A DNA stretch of 63,995 nucleotides, the filler included, from Intoshia linei (Eukaryota > Animalia > Orthonectida): NCBI GenBank assembly GCA_001642005.1. It is 5 parts of 5 records of this genome, joined end to end, with 100 filler letters (N's around TTAATTAATTAA, not from the genome) between each part and the next. Parts side by side here need not be neighbours in the genome. Positions count along the whole stretch, not along the records: positions 1 to 27,870 come from LWCA01000436.1; 4 more parts are not named here. One strand, 5' to 3'. Under the pieces are notes generated by a model, which saw only the letters and a program-made list of their open reading frames with translations, was not told where the DNA came from and made no database searches. The translations under genes were made by a program, and so were the position numbers. Position 1 is the first letter of the stretch. Each line of letters starts with the position of its first letter. Below, in pieces: positions 1,562 through 25,541 of this stretch.

Positions 1562-4500
1562 ATGAAAAATAAAATGTACATGTTTCTGTTACTCTTTTTA
1601 TATTTTTGTATGCATTTTGTAAAATGCCAGTTGGATCAGGGTAAACTTATATTCAAATAGTTAATTATTATTTTATTAATTATATATTTCATTATATTTT
1701 AAATATCTTCCTAGTTTGTACTTTATCAAAAGATGAAGGTACATGGAACGGAAAGTGGAAATATAGATATTTTTATGATGTTAATATTAATAAATGCACC
1801 GATTTTTGGTACGCTGGAGCAAACGGAAATCCCAACAATTTTTTAACTCTAGATGAGTGTCAAGCGAAATGTCATACAAATTCACAAAGTATGATTTTAT
1901 ATAATACTAGGTTGACTGTTATGTACTACGTACAAACAGCACCTAGCTCTGCTGAGGACACATTTTTTTCTACCAAAAAAATAAATTCACGTTGAAAATC
2001 TAACTTAAAAATCATACTATTCACCATTATCAATCCTTTCAAGGAGTGATTCCCAAACTTGTTTCAGGTGGGACCGTCATATCACGTTACTTTTTACTTT
2101 AAAGTAAATTATTCCATTTTAATTTTTTGTTTGTTAACATTTGCGTAAAGAATTTTAAAACCAATTTTTATCCCATTTTTTTAATTTATTAGACAGAATG
2201 TGTGTATAATGTTAAAAATAAAGTAAAAACAGTCTAATCCTAAAAATTGTCATAAATAGCATAAATTTCAGAAAAAATAAAATTATAAACTATTTTGTTA
2301 TTTTGAGTGTGATGATATACAAATTAATTTAATTATGATGATATGTATATTTAGTACCAATTTAATAAATACTTAAAAATACCAATTATGTATCAATAAT
2401 TAACGGAATCATCACTTTATAAACATATTTCAGGCGAATTTTACCAATATTGAAAAGTATTGGTTGATAATATATTGAAAATTATTTTTCACCGGAAATG
2501 CGTAGATTTCTGGGGTTAAAATTTTGTACTTATATCAACTGGAATAAGATGCATCAGAACAATCTTTGTTTTTATTTGTATAACCGTTAATTATTTCAAA
2601 TATTTTGTTTTTCTAAAATAATAGCAAAATAAAAAAAAATAAATACTAAAATGTTTTTGACCATGAAGGCGTCACTTTGTGAGATTGAAATTTTTTCTGT
2701 TTGTTAACTGGATACAACTGTATAAACTGTATTTTTTTGAAATTCTAGGGCTATTTTTAATAAAAGAGTAATATGGGATTTGATCGTAAAAATGCAAATT
2801 TTTGGATTTTTGATTTATGATAATGTTTATTATTTTAAAACATAACCAAAATTTATGTTGTATAAAATTCTATGACTTTTCATTTTTACAAAAAATGGTA
2901 ATTTGTGGTTTATTCCGAGAAGATATAAGATTTTGAAATTAAAAATTGAAATTTATCATAACTTTTTTATGCTAGGCCCACTTTTACTCTTAAAAAAATC
3001 TTAGGTCCACTGAAAAAAAATTCGAGCGAATTATAATAAAATAATGATAAAAACAATAATAATGTATTTATTTTTTAGAATTAATGAGACGATTGAGCTT
3101 GACGATTCTGACAGAGTTTATTAATATTAGATACTAATGTGGTAAGCTTTAATCGTAGATTTTCCCTTTTTGAAATTTGTAGTCTATTTATTTTTGTGTC
3201 AGTAAATCTAAAACTGCACTAAACCAACATTCTTCTAAATAAGAGGATGGAAATGGCAACAAAGCAATTATAGCAAAAGTAGTTAAAGTCGGATTATTGT
3301 GCTATAAATTTGTAATATTTTCCAGGCCACACCAAAAAGTCGTAGGCCCCACCAAATTTCCAATATGCCACCAAAAATTTCGTCATGCCCCACTGGTGGG
3401 GAAACACTGATTAACATGTAGTATTATAAAATAATAATTATGATAAATGCAATATTGACGAGAATACAATTTATGTGTTTTAGCTACTATCCAGTCGTTC
3501 AATAGATGTTTGTTGGAGCAAGCTAGGGGTAGCTGTGATCAGTGGATGTCGAGATATAGTTACGATTCTAACACTAAAAAATGTAATCAATTTTGGTACG
3601 GAGGATGTAATGGGAATGAAAATAGATTCGAAACCAAATCTGAATGTCTAAGTGTCTGTAATTCCTATCAAAACACCACTCCATCTCTATCTCCAGGTAT
3701 AATTAACATTGTTTTTATCTAATAATTACAGCAATGATTCCAAAACTATATACCGTGATGTATTAGAGCGTACCTTCAAGATGGTTTGCAAAAATATAAT
3801 GAATTTTGAGTTTATGGACCCATTCTAAGTAAAAACATCCTAGCAAATACAATACTTATAAATTACGTTACAATTTTAACATATATTTTAACTATGCAAT
3901 TTTTAATTTTATAATTTTTATATTAGGGTGTCCACTTTCGACACTTTTTGTTGAATTAGAAAAAGTATATTTTACTGAACATTGGAAATGTAATTTAGAA
4001 CATAAATATCCAAGACCAAATTCCAAGGTCTATAGTTTATTCCACCTGAAAATTTTTAAAGCTTTTTAAAAAAACTAACTTTATTTAAATTTATTAATTA
4101 AAATTATTGAATTTAGGCAACAGCTTAGAACATTTTTTTTGAACCAAAATTTTAAAGGGGGCTTTTAGGAAATTTTTTTGAACCAAACTTTTAAGGTGGG
4201 TGTCGTGAAAAATTTTATAACTATCAATTGAACGATAATTGATATTAATATAGAAACAGCATTACACTAACAAAACAAAGTAATTAAGCAGTGTATTTTA
4301 AGCCAGATTAATTTAGGTCACATTTCAGTGTGTAAAATGAATAAAATTTACATTGTTATGAGCCAAAATATCTATTCAAAAAAAAATTATCTAAAAACCA
4401 CCCTTGAAATTTTGGTTCAAAAAAAATCTTAAAAACCTCCCCTTGAAAGTTTGGTTCAAAAAAAATTACTAAAATCCAATATTAAACTAAAATATAAATG

Positions 4501-7500
4501 AAAGTTTTACACATTCTACGACTTGCCCGTGGAATGTGTACATTTCAGTTTTAAACATTCTATACGAAATATATAAAAAATTTCATGTTTGTTATTATTT
4601 AAATCAGAGGGGGAAGCATTTACTGTTCTAAGGACGCACTAACGTCCCCAAAAAATTTAAAAAGGCCCACCTTTATAAATAAAATTTAATCAAATACAGC
4701 AGTTATTCTCATGGTGACTGGTCACACCAAGGGTTCAATACGAAAATTTAAGATGATTGGGGTGAATGATAAATTTTTAACACATTTTATTCAATTTGGT
4801 AAAATCTTATGAGAAAAAATCAAAATTTTACCAACCCTTAAGAAAAAAATCCACTTTTACCAAAAATTTATATTTAATTAATAATTTAAATTATTCACAA
4901 GGCCGCATCAAATCGTCAATAAGACCGTACTTTCACCACTTATGATCTAAATAATGAAACAAAAATCCAATAATTTAATAATTATAAGGAATTTTTATTT
5001 ATTTTTACAAATCTAAAATTAACATAAAATATTTAGTTTCATGTGAAAAACATGACATTACAATCTTTTTGGATGCATCTATTACTGAATCTGACATATG
5101 GACGAAAAAATTAGACATGGTTGTTGATATTATAAAAAATAATAAATTTGGAAATGATGATTTGTCGAAAACGCGATATAGTTTGTATTTGTACTCTAAC
5201 GACATTAGCTCGGAAGTAGTCAATATGGGAGAAAAATTTTCTACGTTTGATGAAAGCATTATAAAAAAGTTGGTTTACGCTAATACCGATACTGCCGATA
5301 TAGCCAATGTTTTACGTTTTTATAGAAGTAATTTATACGATAATGCTAATAAAGGATACAGAAAGGAGTATTCAAATATTGTGCTGATAATCACTGATAG
5401 TGTGGACGATAACACCATTTCAAATGATATTTTAAATGAAATAAATTCTACAAAATCTATAGCTAAATTAGCTGTAATTGATATTCAAGACGGGCAAAAC
5501 AGTAATGCTATTCGATGGTCTAATTTGGCCGATCTCACAATTAAAACAGAAAAATACAATGATTTTAATGAAGCTAATACAAACATGGCTAATCTTGTCT
5601 GCAATTCGCTAAAAAGTAATTCACATTATCATGTTAGGTTTATTAACGATTCGCTATTAGCTTTATATTTTAAATTTTTTATTCACACTTAGATTCCACT
5701 AAATTAATTTTTTCTAGACTCTTGTGATAATAGATTTTTTGACTTGACTGTCATTGCAGTGTCATCTCAAAACGATGGAGATTTAGAAGAAAATGCTATA
5801 TTATATGGAATATACAAATCCATGCATCAAGGAATGTTTGGTGCAATTATGCCCACTGGTACGCACATGGCTATGATAAATTCTCCTGAAACGGTTACGA
5901 ATTTTAATTTGGATTTTATAAATTACTATAACCAAGAAGCTTTATATACAAATATTCTTTCCACTACATTTTCGAGCTTTATTCCAAATATTGAACAAAG
6001 TTTATCGATTGCAACAAATTTTTATGTTTCGCAAAATACACGGAATATTAATGATCGTAGCAATTACAATAATGTGGTTATTTTGTTGGTTAATACGAGT
6101 CCGGCTTTGAACTCATTAGCTGGAATTGGTATTGTCACTGCTGCCAACACTTTAAAAAGATATGCATCCATATATGTTATCAGTGTTCCACTTTTTATTA
6201 AATCTGTAGACTATGATAGAGATTTGCTTATACAGATTTCCTCAGATGGCCACGTCTATGAAGCTTCTAGTTATGATAACATACATAACGCATTTCAAAT
6301 ATTACAATCCAAATTATGCTCCGATATACCCACAACAAGTAATTTTTATATAAAAGTATTGATACAATTAATTTTAATAATTATTTTATAATAATAAATT
6401 GTACAATGTATATTAGGTCTATTTCATTTCCATTTTTTATAATATCGAAATATATAACATATATAGATAACTAGTTGACTGTTATGTACTACTTACAAAC
6501 AGCATCTAGCTCTGCCGAGGAGACATTTTTATTCCACCAAAAAAATTATATAAACCTATTTTGTAATTTTTAATGTGATGATATATATTCAGTACCAATT
6601 TAATAAATACTGAAAATACCAATTATGTATCAATAATTAACCGAATCTTCACTTTAAAAACATATTTCAGTCGAATTTTACCACTATTGCAAAGGATTGT
6701 AATAATTTATTATAATTACTAATATAATAATATATATATATATAAAAATGATATTAACAAAATTGATAGCTTTTATTTCGTTGTTGTAGTTTCTATTAAA
6801 ATTTGTATTCTTTATTGGAAATGTGTAGACATTTAATTCACATTTTTTTTGAAATTGTAGGATCAATATTTACATTTTCAATTTTTATTTTATGTTAAAC
6901 AAAATATTTGAAAAATATTGGTTGGTAATATATTAAAAATTATTTTTCATCGGGAATGCGAAGATTTCTCGGGTAGAACTTTTGTATTTATATCAACTGG
7001 AATAAGCTCTATCAGAATAATATTTTTTTTTAATTTTTTGACAGTTAATTATTTCACATTTTTTGTTTTAATAAAATATTTCGGAAACAAAATATATGAA
7101 TACTAAAATACTTTTTTGACCGTGAAGTCGTCACTTATTCGTATTGAAATTTTTTATGTGTGTTAACATAATACAACTCTATCACCTGTAAATTTTTTTA
7201 ATTCTAGGGCAGTTTTCATTAAAAAAAGGTAATTTGTGGTTTTGGCCCTGAAGATTTTTTTAAATTTAAATTTATGATAATGTTCATGATGTTAAAATCC
7301 CCATCAGCGTATATATTTTTTTAAATTCTTCAACTCGTTTGATTTTCAAAAAGAGGGACAATTGGGGTTTTTGTCCCGTAAGATGTGAGTTTGGGCGATT
7401 GACATTTATTTTATTATACGTCCTGAAAAAAACTGTAATTGAAATGTGGACTTTATAAAATTTTAAGACTGGTAGTTATTTCAATAAAGTGGGACACACA

Positions 7501-10500
7501 CACATACACAAACAAAAATAGCGTAGCATATTATATAAGTTAGGATGAGCGCCGTTTAAAGGTTGTAAAATGATGCGAATAATTTTGATTTTGACATAAA
7601 AACTAATGATGCGATTCCAAATACTTTTGAATGATACTATTTGTGTGATTTTTATTTGTTTGATTTAGAAAAATTACCAAGAATAAACGAATTTATAGAA
7701 CTACGAAATAAACGACTAAGAAACTATAAATTATAAACATAATAAAAATGCTTAAAGTTAATTAATTAATATTAAATTAATGTCAGAACCAAATAATTTT
7801 AAATTATAATGTTACAATTTGACCTTCCACCAGTTGTACCAAACATTCTATTTGGTTTGGGTGAACAGATAAAACCACAACCCTGAAAATTATTAATCTT
7901 TCAATTGAAGAATGAGGCGAAGATAAATATTGTTTTACAAGTAAAATAATATTCGGAAAATTTAATTTGATTTATTTTATTGAGGGATAATGCATATTTA
8001 ATTAATTTTAATTTAAAAAAACTGATATTTTTTGCAACTAATTTTTTTTTAAAATAGTAGTAAATAATCGGAATTGTAAAAATCCTAAAATTTTGCCAAT
8101 TCCGTTTTTTTGTAATCGTCGCATCACTAATCACTAACCCCACGTCTTTTGCAGTGGCAGATCTAGGATTTTCAGCTAGGGGCAATAATTATTAAGGGAT
8201 AAACTTATATACTGTATTTAAATTTTAATTTTTATATTATGTTTATTATTATATTTCATTCTACTAAATATTTCAACAGCTGCATAGAAATTGAAGTTAA
8301 ACTCCGATAACAGATTAATATAAATATAACGTAAAAATGATAACAATCATAATTTAATAAATGCAATTTTATGAAAAATTAAAATCCTAGAAATTTTTTT
8401 TTATTTTACACAATGTTAATATACAAATTAAAATATTACGCCAGGGGGGAGGGCGGCCTGCACCCAATTAGATTAGCTACTGATCTCTTATTTCCCCACT
8501 TTCTTCTAGCAGTTATAGATTATTTCTAATTAATTAATTATGTATTGGATATACTGTATGATGGACCATGTGACGCTAATTCTGCTAACTAAAAAAAACA
8601 AAAAAAATCCAATACTATATATCAATACATATATTATACATATATATACAATAATATATATTAATACAATATATATACAATAATATATATTAATAAAATA
8701 TATATATATACTATAATATCGACGCAGTCCATGTTAAAAATGTTGAACCATTATTGTCATTGTTATTGAAAAAATAGTGTCAATTTGGATGAATCAATAA
8801 ACAATATTTTAATGCCCCACTTTATTATTTTTTTTATGACTATTTAATAACAATGATAATCTAATATACATTGCAATTTATTTTAAAGTACAATGCATTG
8901 TACTCTAAATAAAGCTTTCACACGAACTCCATAAACCAATTTAATTAAATTTATTATAAATTATTATTAATTAATTTAAAAATGGTTTTACTACTAATCT
9001 TTACATGTTTTTTTTAAGGTTATTTTTCAATAAAATAAAGAAATGTATTTTTAAAGTAAATAAAAGATGTGTTATTAGAGATATTTCTGATTTAGCAAAC
9101 TTTGAAAAGTTTTTTAAATCTTATTCAGGTAGGTCAAACCCGTTTATATGTTAAAGTATTAAATTCACTTTTTATTGCTGAATGATATCTATTTTAATTT
9201 AGCAACACTGAAACCAAATACAGAAAAAGGAAATAAGGGATCACCAGGTTATTTTAAAATAATTTGAAATATTGCGCATGTTCACTGAAAATTCTTTAGG
9301 TGTCATTTGATAAAAATGCTATATAGGGTGTTTTTATTGAAATTTACAATTAATTATAATTATTATTATTATAAAAATTAAAAAATGTAAGGTATTCAAA
9401 CTATGCACTTTGTAAGTTTTTTATTTTTTCCCAATGTATTTTGTTTTTATTTTATAATTATATAAATGTGTAAGAATATATATATTATATAATGTGTATA
9501 TAATTTTTATGCATTGTAACTTACAGTAAGTGCAAAAATAGAAATTTAATGTAGTAATTAAAGTTTAGTGTAGCGTTACCCAACTGCCTACACCGCATAA
9601 TTTTCCATGGTCTCAGAAGTATATGTATAAAATATGGAAAAACGATCCTTAGAGATCGGGACTATTTACATACTATTACTAGGGAAAATTTACATACACG
9701 TCAATTTATTTTTCTCATTTCACTTTTCTTAATAAAAATGTTAGGAAACGCTGGTTTAGAATCTAAACTTGAGATTACACTATAGATGTTTATTTTTTGG
9801 TTTTTTCGGTTAAATGTCAAGTAAATAAAAATTTTTAGGTGAACGAGGTAGAGATGGGGAAATGGGTTTAAGAGGATTAGCTGGCGAAACTGGTGCAACT
9901 GGTTTTATAATTACTTTTTGTTGTTAATTTTATTAGGAAGTAGAGGATTGCAAGGCATAAAGGGAGAAATAGGATCAATGGGAATTAAAGGTACCAATTT
10001 AAATTTAATAAATATACTAAAAAATACAATAGGACAGCAAGGAACATTAGGTTTTCCAGGTCCACAGGGGCGTAATGGATTGCCAGGTTTAATGAATTAA
10101 TAATTATCTATTTATATCTAGGAACTAACGGGTTTACTGGATTGCAAGGACCCAGAGGTATATTAATTACTAAAAATAAACATTTATTTATAGGTCAAAA
10201 AGGAGAAATTGGCAATGGAGGATTTCCTGGAATAGATGGAAAAGCTGGATTAGACGGATTATCAGGCATTCCTGGATTACCCGGAAAAAACGGTGTGAAA
10301 TTAATTTATTTAAAATTTTTTTTATTTTCCTGATAATTCCATTCTAAATTATACTTTATTTTCAATTATATTTCTTTTATTTCTATTTTTTTTATATTTC
10401 TAATTACTTATAATTATAATTAACAACAATTTCTAAAGCATTTCAACCAAACTAAAAACATTTTCCGTTAGTTTAATGTTATAAAATAATTAAGATACAG

Positions 10501-13500
10501 TAGTAATCTCAAAGATTACCATTAGAGCCGAACGTAACATAATTTCAGACCTTATTCGTAAGCGGGGCGCCGTAAAGTTCATTTTTCAGAAATGATATTT
10601 ATAAAAATTATACACAAAAAATTATATATATCTATTCCAGATTCTAGGATATTGTGGACATGAACAGATGTGACTAGATCTATATGATATTACGCAACAT
10701 GTGAACATTTGTTTGTACCTATTTTTTATTTTCAGGTTAACCTATAGTGTAGTAGGGTCGGCTCTTTTGACTACCGCTAGGAATAGAACCAACTTAAACT
10801 ACTTTTTATATAAATTATATGAGTTTATCTAATTTTTTAATATCTTCACTAAAAGTGACCAGTTCAAAAAAGATTAGTAGTTTTTACAATTTTGAGACTA
10901 AAAATGTAATCCAAATTGACAGAAATTAAATAATATAATTTAAAATCCTGGAACATGGATGAAATTGACGAGGAGGACACATAAACAAATAAAAAAGGAA
11001 ATTTAATTTGTGAGTCAAGAGTCTTGACTCAAGACCCATGAAAAATGTTAAAATTCTAGGAAATGTGAACCTATTGACAAATCAGATATAATTTATATTA
11101 AAATTTAGGTATTGACGGGATAAATGGTTTGCCTGGTTTTAAAGGAAGCAAAGGGTTAGATGGACAAATTGGGATACCTGGTTTTCCAGGTACAAAAGGA
11201 AATAAAGGTATATAAATCTCATAATTCCTAGTTGATATATTAATGAGTATATTGGTTAAATAGTGTAATCTCTAATATTTAAATTTTTAATATTATCAAG
11301 GTGATATTGGTTTGACTGGATTATATGGACCGAAAGGAGATAGAGGAGTAAAAGGAAATTTGGGACCAATTGGAGTGAAAGGCGTACCTGGTTTTCCTGG
11401 TTTGAAAGGTAAAATTTAGTATATAAAGATAATTAAAAAATACATAGTGTTATGTCATAATAATAATAATAAATAATTTTAATTTTACTAATCATTTAAA
11501 ACAGGAAATGATGGATTAATTGGTAAAAAAGGAGATAGTGGCATACCAGGAAGTATTGGTCCAATTGGTTCTCCTGGGCTGAAAGGTATTTGTATAATAA
11601 TTTTCTAGAAAATAATTCTGGGGTAGTGTTTCTCAATTTCTTTTGCTGAGAGTACAATAACAACATATTGAAATTTTGACAGCACATCATGAAAAAATAA
11701 ACATTTACAGAAGTTTTACTAACCTCATTTGTGTTATTGGTCTTTTTATAATTTTTTTCAAAATAGACCAATGGTCTATCTTAGAATCCATTTTAGAGAA
11801 TTTAAAAAATTTTTAATAATTTCGATGAAGATTCTATGACATTAAGTGAAATTAAATTGTTTAAATTTCTCATAAATCAAACATTAACCTAATGTCTAGG
11901 GCAGTTTTTTATGGCAAAATGCCATTTTTTATATGATAATCAGCACGAAATTACAAGCATTATGATATCAATATCATGTTTATTAATTAGCTAATTAACA
12001 ATTTATAAAGTCAATAAATGGCATAAAGTCAAAATTTTTATTAAAGGATATTCGACTTAAAAAAATAATATTTATGATATAATGAACAATAAAATTGAAC
12101 AAATACCACTTTATCTATACAATTTATTAAGAAAAGCGACATCTACCACAAATAGTGTTGAACGGAGTTTCAGTTTGTTAAAAAAATTGCTAACTAAACA
12201 GAGGCAATTTTTACTAGTTAATGTTAAGAAGTATATTATTATACTACCACAGGGGTCGTCATAGATGGTCGATTTGTTTAAAACTAATTAAATTTTATTA
12301 AAAAATATAAAAATACATTTAAATTTTAAATGTAATTTGAACTTCAATGAAATATAAAATATTATATTATGTCTAAAATTTATTTGTTGGCGAACTATTT
12401 CATCTTAACCAATTAAAAAAGCTCATAAAATGTAAATAATAATGCTAATAAAGGTCATTTTGTTAATAAGAATGAATTTAGATAAGAAAAAAATTTTGGG
12501 GGTCAATTCAATACTAAAATTTTTTTGGGGTCGATTGACTAAAAGTCGTGACGTCCTCTGTACTACAATGAACATTAATAATTTTTAACATCTCTAATCA
12601 CACAATGAGATTTAAATCGTTTTTTTGATTCGGGGCCTATGAGAATATTAAAATAAAGATGTTTAAATATTGTATTGATTTAATTTAAGGCCTACGATAG
12701 GAAGGTTTGGGGTACAATTCAGTTGGTATTAACCATAAAAACAAACAAAAATTTTAAAGTCAGATAAAGTCAGTAATTTCATTTTTAGGTCAGTTTTTTT
12801 GTTATTCTATAGGTCAATAAAAAATTGCCCTACTAATGTCTGAAAAAAAATAATTGAGAAAGTTAAAATATGATTTGATTTAATTTAAATAATTATACAA
12901 GAAATTATCACGACACCTCCAAATCTCAGGCGGTACACCATTGTCCATAAAAAAAGTTTGATAAACACTTTTCTGGGTATGGTGGAATGGCCATCGAATA
13001 TCGATAAAAATTTTTATTTTTATTTGTTTTCAAATTTATCAAAATATTTTTTTAACCTTCAAAAATTGACCCATTTTTCTGAAAAATTATGGGATTTTTA
13101 GAATTGGGATTTAATAGTATTAAAAATATCGATTATAATTATTAATCAAAATATTTTAGGAAGTTTCGGTTCTAAAGGTAAATATTACATATTTTATTTA
13201 TTTATAAATGTTTTAATTATATTTTTGTAGGGGATAAAGGAAACAGAGGTATCTAAAATATTTTGTATTAATATACAATGTATTAGGTGATATGGGATTT
13301 AACGGTAAAGATGGTAGTAAAGGTGATAAAGGATTACTCGGGTTAAGAGGTAAATATTTTAATACATTTACTATTAATATTATTATTAATAGGTTATCCA
13401 GGAGTCAAGGGAGACAAAGGTGAAAGAAGTCAAAAAGGTTTATATAAATAAATTCAATTATACTAAATCTAATTAGGAGAAAAAGGTGTAATAGGTTCAC

Positions 13501-14461
13501 TGGGAATTAAAGGAAGTCATGGAAATGATGGAAATCCTGGTTTATAAAAGATTTAATATCATAAAAAATTCATATAGGTCAAAAAGGAAACCAAGGCGAG
13601 CGTGGTATTATGGGACCTTCTGGTTTAAAAGGAAAAGATGGAGGTAAGGGAGGAAAGGGCGATAGAGGGAATTCAATAATTGGTCCAAAAGGTGATATAT
13701 AATGATATATTTTAGTCTTGCATGTGTTTTTTTGTTATTATCATTTTTAATAAATTAAAATAAAGGTGAACGCGGTCTACATGGATTTCATGGAAATAAA
13801 GGAAATGAAGGAAGAGCTGGACAACCAGGATCTAAAGGTACGTGAGATCTTTACTTTGATGGATTAATTCGAAAATGAATATAAATTTGTAGGAAATGCA
13901 GGTGAAATGGGTAGAATTGGTTTAAGTGGCCCAAAAGGAGAAATGGGCGCAATAGGCTCACCTGGATTATATGGATTACCAGGAACACGGGGAAAAGATG
14001 GTTTGAATGTATATTTTTTTTATAATTGTGAAAAGGGATTGATGGAAAAGACGGATTAAATGGGGCTAAAGGTTTTAGAGGATTTCCAGGTGTCAAAGGA
14101 GAGGAAGGAAAAATTGGTTTGTATCATAATATAACTATTATATTGAATATTAGGCCCTCAGGGAGTTGAAGGTAGGATTGGACTGGACGGATATCCAGGT
14201 ATTTTTAAATTTTAAAATGATTCTTGATTTCGTATTTTATAGGTTCGCCTGGAAGAAAGGGAGATAAAGGTGTTGAGGGGATGTAATTTAAATAATTATT
14301 ATTTATAAACAATTATATTTTTAGACATGGATTACCCGGATCTAAAGGTACATTTGAATATATAAAAACAACAAAAATAATATTTAGGTGAACCAGGCCA
14401 ATTGATAAGAGAAATTCCAGTTAAAGGCTATAAGGGATCTAAGGGCAATATTGGCGCGTAA
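1562..14461 (+). CDS. Secreted Kunitz-Kunitz-vWA-vWA-collagen protein, about 1038 aa, 28 predicted exons
   Basis: Signal exon 1562-1640 ([22 protein letters not shown]); Kunitz exons 1715-1888 and 3484-3696; vWA exons 5037-5615 and 5718-6338; linker exons 9081-9128 and 9203-9247; 20 Gly-X-Y exons 9839-14347; last exon 14388-14461. Junctions are GT-AG and phase-compatible (phase 1 except one phase 2); total 3117 nt in one frame. Confidence 0.75.
1907..2960 (-). mobile_element. Non-autonomous Helitron copy (3' end intact, 5' end truncated) in intron 2 of the collagen gene
   Basis: CTAG terminus and subterminal hairpin (ctgttatgtac-tac-gtacaaacag); internal sequence shared with the 6471, 34526 and 42102 copies. 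Confidence 0.75.
4133..4466. repeat. Foldback-like inverted repeat with tandem subunits
   Basis: Two TTTTTGAACCAAA(A/C)TTT(T)AA(A)GG units on the left face two CCCTTGAAA(T/G)TTTGGTTCAAAAAA units on the right. A similar arrangement occurs at about 38866-39003. Confidence 0.55.
4700..4945. mobile_element. Degenerate piece of the hAT MITE family seen at 20077-21129
   Basis: Shares ccaaggg...aatacgaaaattta(a)gatgattg, aatcttatgagaaaaaa and ttttaccaacccttaag with 20360-20540, plus a GCCGCA-type subterminal motif. Confidence 0.6.
6471..7545 (-). mobile_element. Full-length non-autonomous Helitron (1075 bp)
   Basis: Minus strand reads A|TCCTAACTTATATAAT...(GT)n...hairpin...CTAG|T: 5' TC, 3' CTAG, inserted between A and T, no TSD. 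Confidence 0.85.
8152..8482. mobile_element. hAT-type MITE
   Basis: Imperfect TIRs CAGTGGCAGATCTAG / TAGATTAGCTACTG; degenerate 8-bp flanks gtcttttg/atctctta. Confidence 0.5.
10525..10764. mobile_element. MITE of the AGAGCCGAA-TIR family
   Basis: AGAGCCGAACGTA ... TAGGGTCGGCTCT. Related termini at about 19440-19730, 33100-33497 and 41262-41493. Confidence 0.45.
11897..12832 (+). mobile_element. hAT deletion derivative carrying a C-terminal transposase remnant (12082-12249)
   Basis: TIRs TAGGGCAGTTTTTTATGGC / GTCAATAAAAAATTGCCCTA; perfect 8-bp TSD CTAATGTC; peptide [19 protein letters not shown] matches the hAT SxxxERxFS motif. Confidence 0.85.
12250..12560. mobile_element. Innermost hAT MITE of the nest
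   Basis: TIRs CAGGGGTCGTCA / TGACGTCCTCTG; TSD tactacca/tactacaa; it interrupts the transposase remnant. Confidence 0.75.
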
Positions 14462-14852
14462 TATTTATAATATACAGTGTATATTAAACACTAAAAATAT
14501 TAAATACTGATATTCCTAGTATTTAAAAAGCACAAATTGTACAATGTACAATTTTACTAAAATTAAATGTTTTGTACAACAAATGGTTTAAAATTTAATC
14601 ATAATTAGAAGTTGTCATAAATTACACACAAGTGACTTTTTTTAAGAATTTTATAAATTTTAATTTTTAGCAGAAACTATCAATACACAGACAAACCTTC
14701 ATATTGGATGTTTTCTGTATTGATAGTATAGTTAAAATAATTAGAAAATTGTTGTAAATAGAAAATTAGATTAGGTTGAGATGTCTAAAAAAGTTTTAAA
14801 ATTTTTTAAATAAATGATAAAATACGATATATAGTGCGTTTTATAATGTTAA

Positions 14853-14940
14853 CTAGCTTGGCTGTTTTGTACTACGTACAAACAGCACCTAGCTCTGCTG
14901 AGGGTACTCGTTTATTATACCAAAAAAATAAATTCACTAC
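14853..14940 (-). mobile_element. Helitron 3'-terminal fragment, followed by a hAT-like MITE (about 14950-15831)
   Basis: CTAG plus hairpin gctgttttgtac-tac-gtacaaacagc; MITE right end GGTTGGAAAACACTG at 15831. Confidence 0.65.
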
Positions 14941-15943
14941 AACATACTACTATGCTTTTCAACCCATTTTGGTTGGCGACACACATTTCAATCTGAAAAC
15001 TTTTTGCGACACACCAATCTAAAAATATACTATTGATTCGTTGAAACGAAATTTTCACATTTTGAAAAATTTAAGATATCGCGACAACTTTAGTATACAG
15101 GTCGTGTAGTTTTCTATATAAATTACCATGGTGAAAGTATTTTTTAATAAAAAATTGTATTGAAGTGGGGCACACCATTTGAATATTCTCATGCAAATAT
15201 CTTATGTAAAAATTAAAACTGATCTTCATTTAAGAAATTATTCATTTTTGACGATATCTATTGTCAACGTCTTTTGGTGTGATCCTCATGTTTAGCTATG
15301 TAAGCCAATATTTTAAATTATACCAAAACTCAATTTTTATGGAGGTTAATTATGATGAAAAATATAGTATTTTTGTAATATTCGTAAGAATTGCATCACG
15401 ACTAAAACTCAAAATAAAGAAATCTAGTCTAAATTTAAATAATAAAAATATATATATTAACAACATGGACCAATAGAAAAAACCTGTTGTCATACATAAG
15501 TTGGCAAGACATTATTTCGTCTGATTATAATGAGACAACATTTTACTTATAAGATATGGCTATCATATAATATATTATATTAAATTTGAAACAGAATGAT
15601 ATATCTCATTATCTCAAGGTGTTTAATTATGAAATTTAATTAATTGATATTTTTCATGGGTAATAGCGAAATTTGATCTAAAAAATAGTACATTTTGTAT
15701 TCATAATTATTATTAAATTGTTATGTCTTATTCCAAAATGTTGTTTAAAAAATGAAGTGGGTAATATCAAAATAAGTACAGTACATGTACTGTAATATGG
15801 GTAATATAGTAAAAAAGGTTGGAAAACACTGCTCTAACCTCAGACCTTCTCTACCTACTTACATACATACTAATACTTTTTTATCTCTCGCAATAAAACA
15901 ATATACAATTTATTATAAAAGCAATTGTAAGTATACAATGTTG

Positions 15944-16773
15944 TTATAAAGTACGAACAAGTAATTGTAGTTGATTTTCATTTTTCGTTAAACGAAATGC
16001 CCTTTTTATTTTAGCTATTGCTCTTTCTGCTGGATCATTGACTACGGGCGCATCTCCTATTGGTGTCAAAAATAAATTCAAGTACACGTTATATTTAGAA
16101 AATCTTTGAATTGCAACGGAGGATATAGTTTTCAAGGAATAAATATTGTATTCCATTAATTCATTGAATCTAATTTATATAATATAAAAAAACTAAAAAT
16201 ATTTTAATTTACCTCTCAATCGTTTTTTTGTCATTATTTATTGCACGCTTAGCTGAAGCTGCATCAAGCCAAAATATCAAGTATCCATAAATAACGAAGA
16301 CTATGAAACTTCTGACTTTTTCAGTATTCACAAGTTTTAGAATGAAAGCTTTAATAATATACAGTATCCTGCCCATCCATCTTGCTTTAGAAACCGATCC
16401 TGATTTCTTTAATTTTACTTTTGTACCATTTACAATAGCCAACGCCAATACAAAACATTCTGCGTAATTACCTCGACTATGATTTAAACCATCCTTAAAT
16501 TTTAGTATTGTGCATGTCATGTTGATGTCATTAAAGGTGTTAATATTTGGAGCAATTTTAGGTTTATAATATATATCATTATGGTCGATGTAGTATTCTT
16601 GAACCTTTTTGACTTCATACACTGTAATGTCAGAAGATGTGGTGTCGCCAAACAATGCTCTAAAACCATGCGTCAATATTATTTCAAATATATGATGACG
16701 ACACGGCAAATTGAGTATATCATGTAACAAATTGGTCAAAATTTTGACACTACCTATGTTTTTAGAAGTATTT
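15944..16773 (-). mobile_element. hAT-superfamily (hATm-like) transposase, C-terminal part, copy A, with a 43-bp intron at 16170-16212
   Basis: Motifs LPCRHHIFE (CxxH), ARWM and VVNDPAERAI (catalytic Glu). The two ORFs join in frame across a GT-AG intron. Confidence 0.7.
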
Positions 16774-17140
16774 NTATATTATATTAAATTTGAAACAGAA
16801 TGATACATCTCATTATCTCACGGTATTTAATTAGGCAATTTAATTAAAATTTAATTAATTGATATTTTTCATGGGTAATAGCGAAATTTGATCTAAAAAA
16901 TAGTACATTTTGTATTCATAATTATTATTAAAAAATTTTATGTCTTATTCCAAAATGTTGTTTAAAAAATAAAGTGGATAATTTCAAAATAAGTACTGTA
17001 ATATGGGTAATATAGTAAAAAAGGTTGGAAAACTCTGCTCTAACCTCAGAACTTCTTTTAATATACTAATACTTTTTTATCTCTCGCAATAAAACAATAT
17101 ACAATTTATTATAAAAGCAATTGTAAGTATACAATGTTGT

Positions 17141-18080
17141 TATAAAATACGAACAAGTAATTGTAGTTGATTTTCATTTTTCGTTAAACGAAATGCCATT
17201 TTCATTTTAGCTATTGCTCTTTCTGCTGGATCATTGACAATGGGCGCGTCTCCTATTGGTGTCAAAAATAAATTCCTGTACACGTTATATTTAGAAAATC
17301 TTTGAATTGCAACAAAGGATATAGTTTTCAAGGAATAAATATTGTATTCCGTAAATCTAATTTATATAATATAAAAAAACTAAAAATATTTTAATTTACC
17401 TCTCAATCATTTTTTCGTCATTATTTATTGCACGTTTAGCTGAAGCTGCATCAAGCCAAAATATCAAGTATCCATAAATAACGAAGACATGAAACTTCTT
17501 ACTTTTTCAGTATTCACAAGTTTTAGAATGAAAGTTTTCATAATATACAGTATTCTGCCCATCCTGATGTTCATGAGGATGCTGCTTTAGAAACCGATCC
17601 TGGTTTCTTTAATTTTACTTTTGTACCATTGACGATAGCCAACGCCAATTCACAACATTCTGCGTAATCAGCTCCACTATAATTTAAACCATCCTTAAGT
17701 TTTAGTATTGTGCATGCCATGTTGATGTCATTAAAGGTGTTAATATTTGGAGCAATTTTAGGAGTATAATATATATTATTATGATCGATGTAATATTCTT
17801 GAACCTTTTTGAACTCATCCACTGTAATGTCAGGAGATGTGGTGTTGCCAAACAATGCTCTAAAACCATGCGTCAACAACCACGTGTGTAACACACACAA
17901 CACGGCAAATTGAGTATATCATGTAACAAATTGGTCAAAATTTTGACACTACCTATGTTTTTAGAAGTATTTGAAGGGGTGGTATCATAAAAACAGCCGA
18001 TTACCTCCGACGTCAATTTGTAATCGTGAAGGAGATTATACACAGTATTTGCTGTAGTGATACCTTTTCTTTATCATGAG
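17141..18080 (-). pseudogene. hATm-like transposase, copy B, frameshifted
   Basis: Near-copy of 15944-16773 that extends further 5' through GCFYDTTPSNT (a catalytic Asp motif). The CRHH and ARWM motifs are destroyed by local sequence replacements. Confidence 0.7.
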
Positions 18081-18455
18081 ACATTATAACAATTTCTGTA
18101 GAAATTAATCTAAAAAGTTTTATAACCTTATCGTGTTTTTATGCCAAAATTCTTTTTAATACTTGACCATTAGTTGGCAAATTTTTCTGGTTTATAATTA
18201 ATTATATTATTATTTATATTATTATTAATTATTATATTATTTAAATTATTTTAAATTTTACATGACATCTTCAATTAGCATAAATACTATAATTTTGTAT
18301 ACTATAATTAATAATGTAAAAATTTTTTATAATCGAAACCAAAAAAAATATAAAAATAGCTTGGAAGAAAATAAGTTAAAAACCATGATTTATTGAATAA
18401 ATAAGAAATAGTGATTCGCGACCATTTATAACCAAAATGTTAAACTTTAATTTAG

Positions 18456-21400
18456 GAGCAATTATCAATGGATTCATTTCAACATCAGTAACAACATTGG
18501 AAAAGCGTTTCTATCTAAGCAGTAAAATGACTGGCTTTCTATCGGTATTTTATGATATTGTTGTCGTGTTCTTATTGATTCCAGTCAGCTTTTACGCAAC
18601 TCAATTTCATAAAATTCGTATAATTGGTATTTTATAAATTATATACATTATTCAATTAAAATTAACACCAAAATATGTAATCCTCAAGTAGTGATTAATA
18701 TATTATTAACATTGTAATGATAGTTAAAAATTATGTATTTACATAATTTCTAACTTTTTATGCTCGTGTTATATGTACTACAGTACCATTGTGCAGTGTT
18801 TAATTTACAAGATTGATGGATTAGTTTAATTTGAAAATGTACATGAATGATCGAGTTCTCCATATCTAGTGGTAAATGTAATTATGAATATATTACATTA
18901 ATTCAATATATGTGTGCGGTTTTGACCACGATGTTTGTATTTGATTTTGTAATTAATATCACGGAAATGATTGTAAACACTCCTGCAGTAATCGCAAAAC
19001 TATATAGTATATTTATGAGTCTTGTATGATTCAAATAAATGCATTATATGTAATTATAAATTTTTTAATTTAGCCATCAGCATCACTATTATGGGAATTG
19101 GATCGATATTGTTTTCAATGCCACAATTTTTTTCATCTTTATATCATTCTTTAAACTTGAATGATTCTTCTCAATATACTTGCTTACCAAGTAATGTTAT
19201 GATAATGGTTGGTTAATTTGTAAGAGTTTTGGTTTAGTCTTAATATTTAAATTTTAAAAATCAACGCATTATGGTATAATAGTATGTCATTCTTTCATAC
19301 GTATGCTTCATCATATACATTCATTATTTTTGTAATACCCTCTATTTTTTGAAGAATTTTTTTAAAAAATAGTAAAAGTTTCGAAAAAGAAAACATTTTC
19401 AATCAATAAACTTTGATATATATTTTTACATTGAGTGCATACTCTCAGTGCCAAACCTACGGTACCGAGCATCTCTTCAAATAAACTCGAAGAAATTTTT
19501 GTATAACAGGGACCTTATTTTTCGAAATTGAAAATTACAAAAGTATACCTATTTTTTTTGTTAAATTTAAAATTTAAACGGCAAAGTAAAAGATCCTTAG
19601 AGAAATGGATACGGGTATATTCCACTACGCTTATGATACCACTACCGTTGGTATAATTTTTTTTAGAGGCTTAATTTTCATTTCCGGTAGCCTTGCATTG
19701 CCCATAGGTTCGGCTCTACAATGGAGAGTCTGCATACATTAGATTTATATTGTAAAATTTGTAATGCATTATTTATATAAATTTGATTTAATTTAGAATC
19801 GGCATTCACGAAACTTGGCAAAATAGACATATTTAGTTATTCAATATTTCTAATTGCGCAAGGGCTTCATGGCATTGGATGTTCTGCATTGTTTACAGTT
19901 ACATATGTAACATTGGATGAAAATGTATCCCAAAAACAATCATCAATATATACTGGAATCCTATATGGATTCAGTGTATTTGGGCCAGCCATCGGATATA
20001 TTATTGGTGGAATGGCTTTAAATTTATACGGAGATTTCTATCGTGTTTCAACGTAAGTTTTTATTGTTAACTAGATCAGGGGTGCACAACCTTTCCACCA
20101 ATTCAGCCACAATGCTACTTTTCTCATTGATACTACGACCACACAAAATTTACTTCGACATTGAGAAAGTTTTCTCTGGATCCCAGAGTCTGGACCTAAA
20201 TTTTAGGTCTAATAAAATAATTTTGTTTAAATTTGAATATCAGCAAGTTTTAATTAATAATTTTCAATTGAATTAATCCTTAATTCACTCATAAATTAAC
20301 ACCATATTTGTCATTTATCTGAATCAGAATAAATAGCAATAGTAGGATTAATGCAGTGCTTCTCATGGGGGTGACCCCAAGGGGTGAATACGAAAATTTA
20401 GATGATTGTAGGCGAATCTACAATTTGCAACTTAAAATTTAAAAGTTGTACAATTTTCAACATATTTCATTAAATCATCCAATTTAATATAATCTTATGA
20501 GAAAAAACCAATATTTTACCAACCCTTAAGGAAGAAATCCCTTTTTACCAATATTTTTTTTTAAAAATCCATTTTTACCAAAATTTTAGAATAAAAACTA
20601 CCCTATCTGATTCCAAAAGAAAAAACCAAATTTTACCCACCCTTAAAAAAAATCGCTTTAACCAATATTTTTATGAAAGATCCCATTTTACCAAATTTTT
20701 AGATCAATAATTCTTCTGACTGATTCCATAAGAAAAAATTTAACAAATATCCTTTTACTAATATTTTTTTGAAAAAACATTAATCATTAATTTTTCGGAA
20801 AATAATTAATAATAATTGGACAACAAAAAAGAGTTCTTTTAAAAACCGATTTGTTGATACATTAGAGTGGAAGATATAAAAAAATATGTAAATATTAATA
20901 ATGACATAAAAAAACATATCAGTGACTACCTTGATTTTGTGTACCCTTCGCTAACATTTGAGAAACTAAGGCAAAGTCAAGAATGTAACTTTTTGATTAA
21001 AATATTTTAAATAGACCTTGAATAAAATCTCATTTTAACTTTTCAATTTGAAGTAAAATGATATATTACATTATGATCAGATGTATTGCCCACAGCCGCA
21101 CATAAACGCTCTCATGTTGTGCACCCCTGAACTAGATTGAGTGATATGTATTTCGTACAAATGACAGCTAGCTCTGCTAAAAATTCTATTATAAATTGTG
21201 ATTTTTTAAATTATAAACAGTAAGTGTTATTATTATTAGTGTTATTAACAGTAATTAAAAGTTTAAAGTGTAGTGTAGTGTAGTAAAAAGTGTAAATAAA
21301 CTATAACAGACAAACAGACACTCTCACGCAAACATTCAATTTATATAAGGAAAAGATTAATACATATATATATATATATATTTAATTTTTAGACCGAAAG

Positions 21401-24400
21401 GTATCGACATCAACAATAAAAATTGGTATGGTGCATGGTGGATATCATTTTTAGTTGGTGGTATTATATTACTCATTTCGAGTGTTCCAGCTTTTGGTTT
21501 CGGACATCATTTGCCACGTATTATTTATTTTTTATATTTTTGAAATTGTGCTCTACCAGGCTTGTCAGTCCGGTTAGACTCTAGAAACCCATACCCACAC
21601 AAAACTTTATTATTTGGAACTCATATTCCGTACAGTCTATTTTGTTACAAAATAATTTAATCGCGTACTACCTATCACGTTTTCAAGTACGTTTTTTGAT
21701 AAAGAAAACAAATTTCAATTTCAATAATAACCGTCATGGTACTCTTCCCATTGAAGGTAATTTACGGTACCGATGCTGTAATTTTTAAACTAAAATACAT
21801 AGTTACCTTTTTGGTAATAATAATAATGATAATAAAAATATCGTCCAGTTTCAAATCACAATTAAGCTTAAATTTATTTTATCAACTTAAATGATTTCTT
21901 CGTTCACTGATAACACTAACGTTCCATTTATTATTACTATTGTACTATTGTCCATTGTACAATTTCATACCATGAAACACCCAATAAATATACATATTTA
22001 GACTACGAACGGATAAAAAATGAAAGGATATCAGAAGCACACGGTTGTAATATAAATGAGGATTGTGTAAAAATATCTTTTGGTCGAAATTTATCAGAAT
22101 TACCGAAAACAATGCTTCGATTATGTAAAAACTCAACATATGTATTACTAATATTATGTGATTCATTCGATGCTTTATTACTAAATGCTTTCATAATATT
22201 TGCTCCAAAGGTTATGGAAACTCAATTTAATCTGTCTGCAAGTAAAGCATCCATTTTATGTGGTGCAGCTTTAACTCCGGCTGGAGTAACTGGAACCATT
22301 CTCAGTGGGTATTTGATTCGAAATATGAATGTAAAAAGTAAAATGAAATTTGGAGCCTTGATGTTTATTATATCTATACCGTTCATCCTTGCATTTTTGC
22401 TCAATTGTCCATCAACAAATATAATTGGAATACACGAAAAATATAAAAATAGGTATTTCAAAAATGGAATTGTTAACGAAAAAAAGCGTTATTGAAATAG
22501 AATTTACAGTGCGCGATAGTATGTTCAGATCTTAGACAAATTTCGAAAAAATTAAGTTATTTAAATAAAGCTGAACACACACACATATAAACAAAAATCG
22601 TGGAACATACTATATAATTAGGATGTATGGATGTCATCTCTAGCAAATTAAATGATGGTTACTTAGACGAAATCGATTTATAATTTATGATAATAAATAT
22701 ATGATAGGTTTATTTATTTGGTGTTTCGATTTTGCGTTTTTTATATTAATCTTTTTTTTACGAACTATGAAATATCCATATCTACTGAGAAATTTATATA
22801 TTAGAATGGGATCTGAACGTACTGTCAATTCACTAATTATTTGTATAAAATCGATAAAATTTTTTTTTTGTGTCTGGTGTACGTTACCATTTATTTAACA
22901 AACTAAGACTACTAGAAATTTTATATACTGAAATTGTAAGATAGATCTTTCTGGTTTTTCAATCTAAAGAGTCGGAACGATCCCAATCTAAAACGTAATT
23001 TACCATTATCAGTAATATCACTTAAATAACTTAAAATCTTTGAACACCCCCTTAAATGTAATGACAAATAAATTTAACAATTATGACAACTGGAAATTGT
23101 TGAGTGATCACTGATAATTATAATAACCCTTCAAATGTCATTAGAAAAATTTCATGTAAACTATCTACCCGCCTGTATCCCTTCGTCAATATTTAAAAAC
23201 ATGCTTTGTCCGCGCGTAACCGTTGTAGAATTCGATTATGAATCGTAAATGAGTGGGAAATATTATTTTTAGTTTGATTTTAATTAGTTAAAATTTAATT
23301 AATTTTTATTTTTATCAAATATTTTATATTTAACAGTACGAGCATCAATTTAATCGACAAATGCAATTCAAAGTGTCAATGTTCTGTAGATTATCAAGAG
23401 TATATATGCCAATATGACAACAAAACTCAACAATTGTACACATACGCTTCTCCATGTTTTGCAGGATGTTCAACGTCTTATTCTTCTTCGGTATATACTT
23501 TTTAAATCACATCTTATTATGATAGAAAGATTGTGCTTGTCTAGACCCAACATTACCACTAATGATGAAGGAAGAATGCAACAAACTGGTACCTAGTTGT
23601 CGCTCGCTTTATCCATTCTTAGTTATGATATTTATTGTAGTATTTCTTACTTTTATGGCCGCAACTCCGACTGTGCAAGCCATTATGAGGTAGTATAGTA
23701 TAATACATATAAAACATCATTAGATGTGTATTATTTACAGAGAGGTCCATCGCTGTAGGACTAGGCTGGATGGTTGCTCGCATTGTAGGTATATTTTAAT
23801 TGATAATTCTAGTTAGTTAATTGATTTTCTAAAAGTTGAGTTATATAAGTGAGCTTATCAGTTTTGGTTAAAAGCAGATTTCGGAACTTAAATTGTCGAA
23901 TTATAAGAATATATATAATATAATTTTTTCGGTATTCATTTCTGTTTATCTTATTTCTATAAAGTAAATATTAATTACAAAAAACATTAAAAAGTCACAG
24001 ATTTAAGTCATGGATACAATTAAAAGTTTTATTTAAATATATTATGGTTCAAATAACTTTTATGAATCCATTAAAATAAGACTACCAAAGATGTATTACC
24101 GTACTATTAGATTTTCAACGTGAATTTGTTTTTTTGGAATAATTAATGAGACATCTCATCTTAATTTTGGCGTTTTTTCTTGTGAATGTTGGTTTTCTTT
24201 TTCTCATTTTATTTCAAATTTCAATGAGTAAAAAAATAACGTTTTCAGTTAGTATAAATTTAATTTTATATTTTATATTACGTTGCTGTAGTGTCATAAA
24301 TTAATTAAAGTTTACAAAATTTTTTGAAAATTCAAATTAAAAATTCCGAAGGAATGAATTATATAGATTTTCACCCATATGTCTTTACTGGAAATGTGTA

Positions 24401-25541
24401 GAGGTTCAATACACACTTTTTTGAAATTGTAGATTTAAATTTTCAATTTTAACAATTTTTGAATTTTGATAATATATTAAAAATTATTTTTCACCGGGAA
24501 TGCGTAGATTTCTGGGGTTGAACTTTTGTATATATCAATTGGAATAAGCTCTATCAGAATAATTTTTTTTTAATTTTTGGACTGTTAATAATTTCACATT
24601 TGGTTTTAATAAAATATTTCGGAAAAAAAATATATGAATACTAAAATACTTTTTTGATTGTGAAGTCGTCACTTATTCGGATTGAAACTTTTTATGTGTG
24701 TTAACATGATACAACTCTACCACCTGTAAATTTTTTGAAATTTAAAAAAGGAAGGGAATTTGTGGTTTTGGCCATGAAGGTATAATTTTTTTAAGTTTAA
24801 ATTTATGATAATGTTTATGATTTTAAAATTCATATCAGCATATATATTTTTTTTTAAATTCTCCAACTCGTTTAATTTTCAAAAAGAGGAACAACAGGGG
24901 TTTTTGACCCTTAAGATGTGAAATTGGGAGGTTGAAATTTATCTTATTATACGCGGGGAAAAAAACTGTAATTGAAATGTGGTCTTTAAAAAATTCTAAG
25001 AATGCTAGTTATTTTAATAAAGTAGGACACACACACAGACAAACAAAAATCGCGTCTCATTTTGTATAAGTTAGGATTGCATATTATAATGAAATTAAAT
25101 GTAACTTTATTTTATTAATACAATTAGTTTTTTAATAAATACCTGGAAAATGGTATATATAAAAAAAATTTTAGCCACCTGATGCCAAGAGCTGAGGCAT
25201 ACATGAAATTATAATTAGATAAAATAAAACATCATAATATGTTTAGATTTAATATGTAATATTAACCTTTAGGGACAATACCAGGTCCAATACTATTTGG
25301 TTACATGATTGATGCAGCATGTTTAACAGATAATAAAAGAAATTGTTTATATTATGATTCACAGAAATTAGCTAAAGATATTATTATCGTTGGAGTTACG
25401 CTAAGAACAGTTGCATTTTTCCTTATACTCATAGCTAGTCTTACATATAAATCACCAAAAAAACATAGAATTGAATCTGATTATACTGACTCAACCGACA
25501 GTGACCAAGAAAATGTAATTAAACCGAATAAATTAAATTAA
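18456..25541 (+). CDS. Organic anion transporting polypeptide (OATP/SLCO, SLCO4-like); first exon not found
   Basis: Exons at about 18456-18626, 19073-19190, 19797-20052, 21393-21517, 22002-22452, 23336-23490, 23526-23689, 23724-23788 and 25273-25541. Motifs: NGFISTSVTTLEKRF, LDENV, GPAIGYIIGG, the OATP signature WYGAWW, Kazal-like CNSKCQC...YASPCFAGC, and GTIPGPILFGYMIDAAC. Confidence 0.93.
20077..21129. mobile_element. Buster-type hAT MITE (1053 bp)
   Basis: Perfect 14-bp TIR CAGGGGTGCACAAC; perfect 8-bp TSD AACTAGAT (nnnTAnnn); internal repeated TTTTACCAA motifs. Confidence 0.92.
21132..21356 (-). mobile_element. Mini-Helitron (225 bp)
   Basis: CTAG end with a degenerate hairpin (gtatttcgtacaaa) and agctctgct. 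The other end reads TCTTTTCCTTATATAA...(TGTC/TGTT)n on the minus strand. Confidence 0.7.
23980..25076 (-). mobile_element. Helitron copy (5' end intact) in an OATP intron; a further 5'-end fragment lies at about 22565-22623
   Basis: Ends acacacagacaaacaaaaatcgcg...tataagttagga|t; body homologous to the 34526-35677 copy. Left boundary approximate. Confidence 0.8.

Follow-up and report, generated by a model that had tools for sequence, protein, structure and literature searches.

vWA domains, Kunitz domains, and an imperfect triple helix are found together in collagens VI alpha3, VII, and XXVIII, each of which has a single Kunitz domain at its C-terminus that is cut off in maturation (PMC10381214). 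In the FACIT collagens (XII, XIV, XX, XXI, and XXII), N-terminal vWA domains lie ahead of the collagenous part and are separated from the helix by a TSPN domain; the FACITs also have several short helices and require a C-terminal GXCXXXXC motif for trimerisation (PMC10381214). Hydra and choanoflagellates possess taxon-specific vWA-collagens of unknown function, whose arrangements are unlike those of the vertebrate types (Hynes 2012, PMC3308698; bioRxiv 10.1101/2021.10.08.463732). Here we describe a gene of the orthonectid Intoshia linei that joins modules of these kinds in a different order. It occupies positions 1562 to 14461 on the plus strand of a 63,995-nt window (the whole stretch of DNA analyzed, along which positions are counted unless a contig is named) and belongs to contig C54 of the assembly. 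We conclude, with a probability of roughly 70%, that this is one expressed gene encoding a secreted collagen chain of ~1022 aa, which is composed of a Kunitz pair, a vWA domain, a degenerate vWA domain, a linker, and a long helix.

Like collagens VI alpha3, VII, and XXVIII, the Intoshia chain combines vWA, Kunitz, and an imperfect triple helix, and in both cases the modules are single exons. In contrast to those collagens, it has two leading Kunitz domains, nothing after the helix, and a helix devoid of Cys. It also has neither the vWA domains that follow the helix in collagens VI and XXVIII nor the FN3 arrays of collagen VII; downstream of 6338 in the collagen contig, no Pfam match to vWA or FN3 was obtained. 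No sequence orthology to these collagens was detected in searches that used single exons of a fast-evolving genome, and the likeness to collagen VI alpha3 N5 described below is one of fold only. The chain shares with the FACITs an N-terminal vWA domain before the collagenous part and differs from them in lacking several short helices, the GXCXXXXC motif, and the TSPN domain. The absence of TSPN had been implied in a preliminary description of this locus and is borne out by the lack of a Pfam match to it between vWA and helix, where the linker is ~10 residues long. The vWA-collagens of Hydra and choanoflagellates display the same combination of vWA and Gly-X-Y sequence, and no Kunitz domain has been reported there. 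Our literature search found no description of a collagen with N-terminal Kunitz domains or of any Intoshia collagen.

The gene consists of 27 exons separated by 26 GT-AG introns, extending from the ATG at 1562 to the TAA at 14459–14461. The chained exons form a single open frame of 3069 nt that encodes 1022 aa and ends in ...GNIGA-TAA. The preliminary description had the pieces splicing in one frame from one signal peptide into 1038 aa; the single frame stands and the length does not. The encoded order is signal peptide, Kunitz 1, Kunitz 2, vWA 1, a second domain of 206 aa, and the Gly-X-Y helix. Exon 1 (1562–1640) contains the ATG and signal peptide in 26 codons plus 1 nt and ends at a phase-1 donor (GTAAAC); by eye, the signal peptide has a hydrophobic core followed by VKC/QLDQ. 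Exons 2 (1715–1888) and 3 (3484–3696) encode Kunitz domains 1 and 2 (Pfam PF00014, E values of 2e-14 and 6.8e-19), and both were recovered in the genome scan, the former as a match at C54:1714-1872. Exons 4 (5037–5615) and 5 (5718–6338) each encode a Cys-flanked domain, the first being vWA domain 1 (Pfam PF00092, E value of 1.5e-8) and the second the 206-aa domain, a probable degenerate vWA according to profile and fold evidence. Exon 6 (9203–9247) encodes TLKPNTEK, a short linker, along with the first of the Gly-X-Y triplets. Every Kunitz and vWA module is one symmetric phase 1-1 exon, and all introns of the gene are in phase 1 save the intron at 14283–14324, which is in phase 2 and keeps the Gly-X-Y register (GVE-GIH-GLP). 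Intron sizes are either 35–102 nt or 0.6–2.9 kb, and the longest introns (1595 and 2864 nt) contain copies of a dispersed repeat that is present elsewhere in the contig. Orthonectid genomes have short introns (median of 57 bp; PMC6543705). The assembly comprises 41,603,068 bases in 3520 contigs, and the piece of the collagen contig in the window has a G+C content of ~25%. Contamination from the host, a nemertean, was rejected on the grounds that the gene has the 25% GC of the genome and introns of 35–45 nt.

Expression was assessed with a public RNA run, X1 (kind not recorded), which contains the vWA exons and was compared with positions 3650–9649. One contig of this run, record 2, is 5543 nt long with a word depth of 112 and matches 5037–5615 and 5718–6338 with zero mismatches. 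It contains three in-frame GT..AG joints, 3696/5037, 5615/5718, and 6338/9203, and continues for 47 letters beyond the last of these. Through these joints, a single transcript contains Kunitz 2, the two ~200-aa domains, and the beginning of the helix, and the collagen gene is real and expressed from Kunitz 2 into the helix start. Two junctions of the preliminary description lie in this interval: 3696/5037 is present in the RNA contig, and 6338/9081 is absent, the RNA going from 6338 to 9203 instead. The 48-nt exon proposed at 9081–9128 on the plus strand is in frame and has AG/GT ends, yet record 2 lacks it; in the 9050–9249 bin, the observed depth (26.3) equals 47 letters at 111.8 spread over 200, and X1 covers nothing else there. 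Because this stretch is skipped, the product has 1022 rather than 1038 aa, and 9081–9128 is at most an unused or alternative cassette. Record 2 diverges from the genome just past donor 9247, which is expected from splicing to 9839, given that the next exon also begins with GT. Ahead of 5037, record 2 has 474 nt, 8 nt more than the 466 nt of exons 1–3. This 5' length fits the modelled start and the junctions 1640/1715 and 1888/3484, and it is the only RNA evidence that bears on them.

The helix region contains 17 plus-strand Gly-X-Y runs of at least four triplets, between 9838 and 14280, and none on the minus strand. Each run has AG before it and GT after it, with the Gly codon split after its first base; the helix exons start in this split codon and have sizes that are multiples of 9 nt. 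Helix exons of collagen VI are likewise multiples of 9 nt and start in a split Gly codon. Exons 7–11 (9839–10292; 63, 54, 54, 36, and 99 nt) have AG/GT borders in phase 1 and are separated by introns of 35–42 nt. Exons 12–14 (11109–11585; 99, 108, and 81 nt) have Pfam Collagen matches, and matches to this model (PF01391) in the helix exons are at or above the cut-off. Exons 15–27 (13160–14461) measure 18, 18, 63, 45 or 27, 63, 114, 72, 108, 81, 45, 40, 23, and 74 nt in the genome sequence. The resulting helix has 458 residues and ~148 Gly-X-Y triplets, slightly more than the ~145 counted previously, and nearly reaches the stop codon. Three imperfections interrupt it: 83 unbroken triplets are followed by GER-SQK, 18 triplets, GNS-II-GPK, 44 triplets, IREIPVK, and a final 3 triplets plus Gly-Ala. 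The first is a Gly-to-Ser imperfection that vanishes if donor 13419 is used, the second a two-residue insertion, and the third a seven-residue break. Pro makes up 7% of the helix, and Lys occupies 37 Y positions. The mature chain has 14 Cys, none of them beyond residue 549; all are in or flanking the four N-terminal modules, a confinement that fits intradomain disulfides. In the genomic reading, the chain has no TSPN domain and no domain after the helix, and both Kunitz exons precede the vWA exons.

The two Kunitz domains depart from inhibitory members of the family in different ways. Kunitz 2 has the canonical six-Cys Kunitz/BPTI pattern (C-8-C-15-C-7-C-12-C-3-C), with Asp at P1 and Gln at P1', whereas trypsin- and chymotrypsin-type inhibition calls for a basic or large hydrophobic P1 residue. 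Kunitz 1 has four Cys, with Trp and Ala at the places of Cys14 and Cys38, so that the Cys14-Cys38 pair is missing; it also has one additional residue ahead of the RYFY strand, and its loop is longer and unclamped. Judged from their sequences, neither domain looks like a trypsin-type inhibitor. Kunitz 1 keeps Cys5-Cys55 and Cys30-Cys51 without Cys14-Cys38, as do two-disulfide Kunitz domains such as conkunitzin-S1; conkunitzin-S1-type domains are free toxins, whereas Kunitz 1 is part of a collagen head. A six-frame Pfam scan of the whole assembly identified just two Kunitz domains, both in the collagen gene.

Exon 4 is readily assigned to the vWA family. It scores 35.5 bits against the Pfam VWA model (curated cut-off of 23.8) and matches a profile of 18 vWA domains from the same genome (17 from the vWA arrays described below plus the vWA domain of contig C315) in hhalign with an E value of 5.5e-6 and a probability of 86%. 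It has a sequence resembling the metal ion-dependent adhesion site (MIDAS; motif DxSxS...T...D), D-A-S-I-T (D-x-S-x-T), and a later Asp, which would make a nearly complete metal site. Exons 4 and 5 are both single copy in the genome, and neither gave a significant match to PDB sequences, collagen VI included. A word-indexed search with exon 4 that was limited to proteins of 105–336 aa returned no match, full-length kin lying outside this range. The queries in these homologue searches were individual exons from an AT-rich genome that evolves fast, and blanks obtained with them do not prove novelty.

Several observations weigh against the chain as we have described it, and the first of these concern exon 5. 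The order signal peptide-Kunitz-Kunitz-vWA-vWA-helix of the preliminary description is upheld in that a single frame contains all the modules and a single transcript those from Kunitz 2 to the helix start; its second vWA domain, however, has no Pfam VWA match even at an E value of 1. The AF2 model of exon 5 was built using an alignment of vWA domains and is biased toward the vWA fold, and a single-sequence AF2 model was useless (predicted local distance difference test score, pLDDT, of 31). Exon 5 could instead encode an unrelated alpha/beta domain of unknown family, giving a head of the form Kunitz-Kunitz-vWA-X. Consistent with this, a phmmer search of 1.84 billion representatives returned two bacterial repeat proteins only, which we judged to be spurious, adding to the blanks in Pfam and PDB; the hhalign probability against the same-genome vWA profile is only 35%; and in a MAFFT alignment the MIDAS places are occupied by Val, Asn, and Asn, although a MIDAS is not obligatory for the fold. 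On the other hand, all ten of the best family-assigned matches in the ESM Atlas are VWA (top score of 0.93), and the size and phase of exon 5 are like those of the neighboring vWA exon. The similarity to known vWA sequences, although weak, is in register across the domain: BLASTP aligns exon 5 with exon 4 (E value of 0.11) with their beta-strand motifs in register, the hhalign match extends in register over columns 58–183 (P value of 3.9e-4), and MAFFT aligns exon 5 over the whole vWA domain, including the same flanking Cys pair. The alignment-based model (pLDDT of 77.5) has vWA topology, and its best PDB matches in Foldseek, at a template modelling (TM) score of ~0.7, are collagen VI alpha3 N5 (the top match), integrin I domains, and VWF A3. 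We therefore regard exon 5 as likely a degenerate vWA domain without a metal site and an unrelated domain as improbable.

The 3' part of the gene raises further points of this kind. The genome sequence is the sole source for the junctions after 9247, for a pair of 18-nt micro-exons, and for deciding between donors 13419 and 13437. Past 6338, record 2 has 3869 nt where the model needs 1403, a surplus of ~2466 nt, and because of it the 3' end and the lack of a C-terminal domain, the latter also claimed in the preliminary description, rest on the genomic reading. The surplus could be an unspliced tail, whose end, were the tail colinear with the genome, would lie at ~16927, within copy two of an 86-nt segment that is duplicated exactly; it could also be a contig chimera or read-through toward the downstream OATP gene, or further exons. 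In the last case, the chain might continue past 14461 through the GT at 14458 (GC/GTAATA), which is like donors used elsewhere in the gene, or through another donor into a C-terminal non-collagenous domain, making the missing domain an artefact of modelling. However, the first two AG acceptors after this GT, at the local short-intron spacing, lead to a stop within three codons, the plus-strand open frames at 14.8–16.7 kb contain zero Pfam domains, contig C54 has no additional Gly-X-Y runs, and an unspliced tail or contig chimera accounts for the surplus length equally well. We consider such a continuation unlikely, slightly more so than an unrelated domain in exon 5. The open reading frames at 14.8–16.7 kb were rejected as a C-terminal domain, being part of repeats and without Pfam match. 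Finally, that two genes, one for a collagen and another for a secreted protein with Kunitz and vWA domains, were merged only by the splicing of the preliminary description, as the repeat-filled 2.9-kb gap 6338–9203 and the fact that a single contig is no proof of one full-length mRNA might suggest, is already largely refuted by the in-frame GT..AG joint 6338/9203 in RNA, by an exon at 9203 that starts Gly-X-Y and uses donor 9247, and by the sequence ahead of the helix exons, in which, in agreement with the preliminary description, no second ATG and signal peptide were seen; we give it very little credence.

The last of these adverse points bear on the helix itself. No trimerisation element was found in the chain, and its Pro content is low for a stable helix. 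The six-frame Pfam scan of the genome, which had no positive control, gave no match to P4Ha_N at an E value of 1e-3 or better; one 2OG-FeII_Oxy_3 match is present in the genome, on contig C2835.

If the gene encodes a single chain with an N-terminal Kunitz-vWA head, as we favor, three chains would form a rod of ~130 nm with a globular N-terminal head and three flexible imperfections in its C-terminal half. Given that no C-terminal domain, cystine knot, or coiled coil is present, we infer that nucleation takes place at the N-terminal head; most likely, chain association would begin there and proceed like a zipper toward the C-terminus, with no disulfides between chains. The two vWA domains may bind further partners in the matrix or on the cell surface. 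Because Kunitz 1 has no loop disulfide and P1 of Kunitz 2 is Asp, the Kunitz domains would serve for binding or shielding and not as inhibitors of the trypsin type. Shuffling of phase 1-1 exons among the vWA-collagens may have given rise to the gene, shared exon phasing being an accepted route to exon shuffling (Hynes 2012, PMC3308698). The preliminary description had likewise invoked phase-1 exon shuffling, with which the single phase 1-1 exon modules agree.

Other collagen and vWA sequences are present in the genome, with Pfam Collagen matches on eight contigs and 40 vWA matches in total. The same six-frame scan, again without a positive control, gave no match to C4 (collagen IV) or COLFI (fibrillar collagens) at an E value of 1e-3 or better. 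On the minus strand of contig C2865 (8921 down to 1616), a signal peptide precedes a vWA domain divided between two exons; Gly-X-Y exons come next, and at the C-terminus there is a hydrophobic segment that, from its sequence, looks like a membrane anchor. On the minus strand of contig C315 (6337 down to 3251), Gly-X-Y exons are followed by a vWA domain with a canonical MIDAS, then by an EGF-like exon of the calcium-binding type and a transmembrane segment; the gene lacks its start, the contig ending at 16748. Both genes are like the collagen gene of the window in their phase-1 Gly-X-Y mini-exons and single-exon vWA style, and differ from it in lacking Kunitz domains and in showing no match to exons 4 or 5 at an E value of 0.01 or better. 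Arrays of single-exon vWA domains also occur on the minus strands of contigs C65 (14–41 kb, at least 16 domains) and C2084 (11–23 kb), and these probably encode one or two giant multi-vWA matrix proteins.

The existence of taxon-specific vWA-collagens elsewhere, together with the two odd vWA-collagens in the same genome, makes the gene described here a variant, probably lineage-specific, within the known and plastic vWA-collagen group, not a new kind of protein. The proposal of a lineage-specific collagen class was not sustained, the evidence for it being one single-copy gene in one genome when taxon-specific vWA-collagens are already known. A more specific idea, that this is an orthonectid-specific collagen without C-terminal trimerisation domain or interchain disulfides, which folds from its vWA head and uses the Kunitz pair for shielding or docking where parasite and host meet (e.g., in the matrix that surrounds the plasmodium or under the ciliated epidermis), strikes us as doubtful; if true, it would represent a collagen adapted to life within the tissue of another animal. 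Few animals are as reduced as the orthonectids, and the matrix proteins that they have kept or invented inform the simplification of body plans; a parasite with ~9,000 genes still makes and expresses a large modular collagen. In this gene, standard phase-1 exon modules are re-used in an order unseen in well-studied collagens, and the only Kunitz domains of the genome are tied to a collagen. With its long helix and its lack of both a C-terminal domain and interchain Cys, the chain lends itself to testing whether collagen folding can be nucleated from the N-terminus. With one gene and no relatives found, the value of these observations is comparative and modest.

The collagen gene is flanked by other open frames and by repeats. 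Upstream, a plus-strand open frame of 134 aa with hydrophobic segments (486–890) ends 670 nt before the collagen start and is probably the last exon of a membrane-protein gene. The next gene downstream (18400–25540, plus strand) encodes an organic-anion transporter (Pfam OATP, E value of 1.3e-29, 21920–22492) with a Kazal-type exon at 23299–23502. One dispersed repeat occurs at 1895–2840, 6460–7546, 14839–14937, and 24466–25077, in the long introns of the collagen gene and in an intron of the transporter gene; in X1, the dispersed-repeat stretches have word depths in the thousands and many variant contigs. Between the two genes, positions 15571–16773 and 16775–17972 are tandem 1.2-kb copies that are 90% identical and carry minus-strand open reading frames without Pfam match. 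A single N at 16774 separates the copies, which suggests that the assembler fused two haplotypes or repeat copies at this joint.

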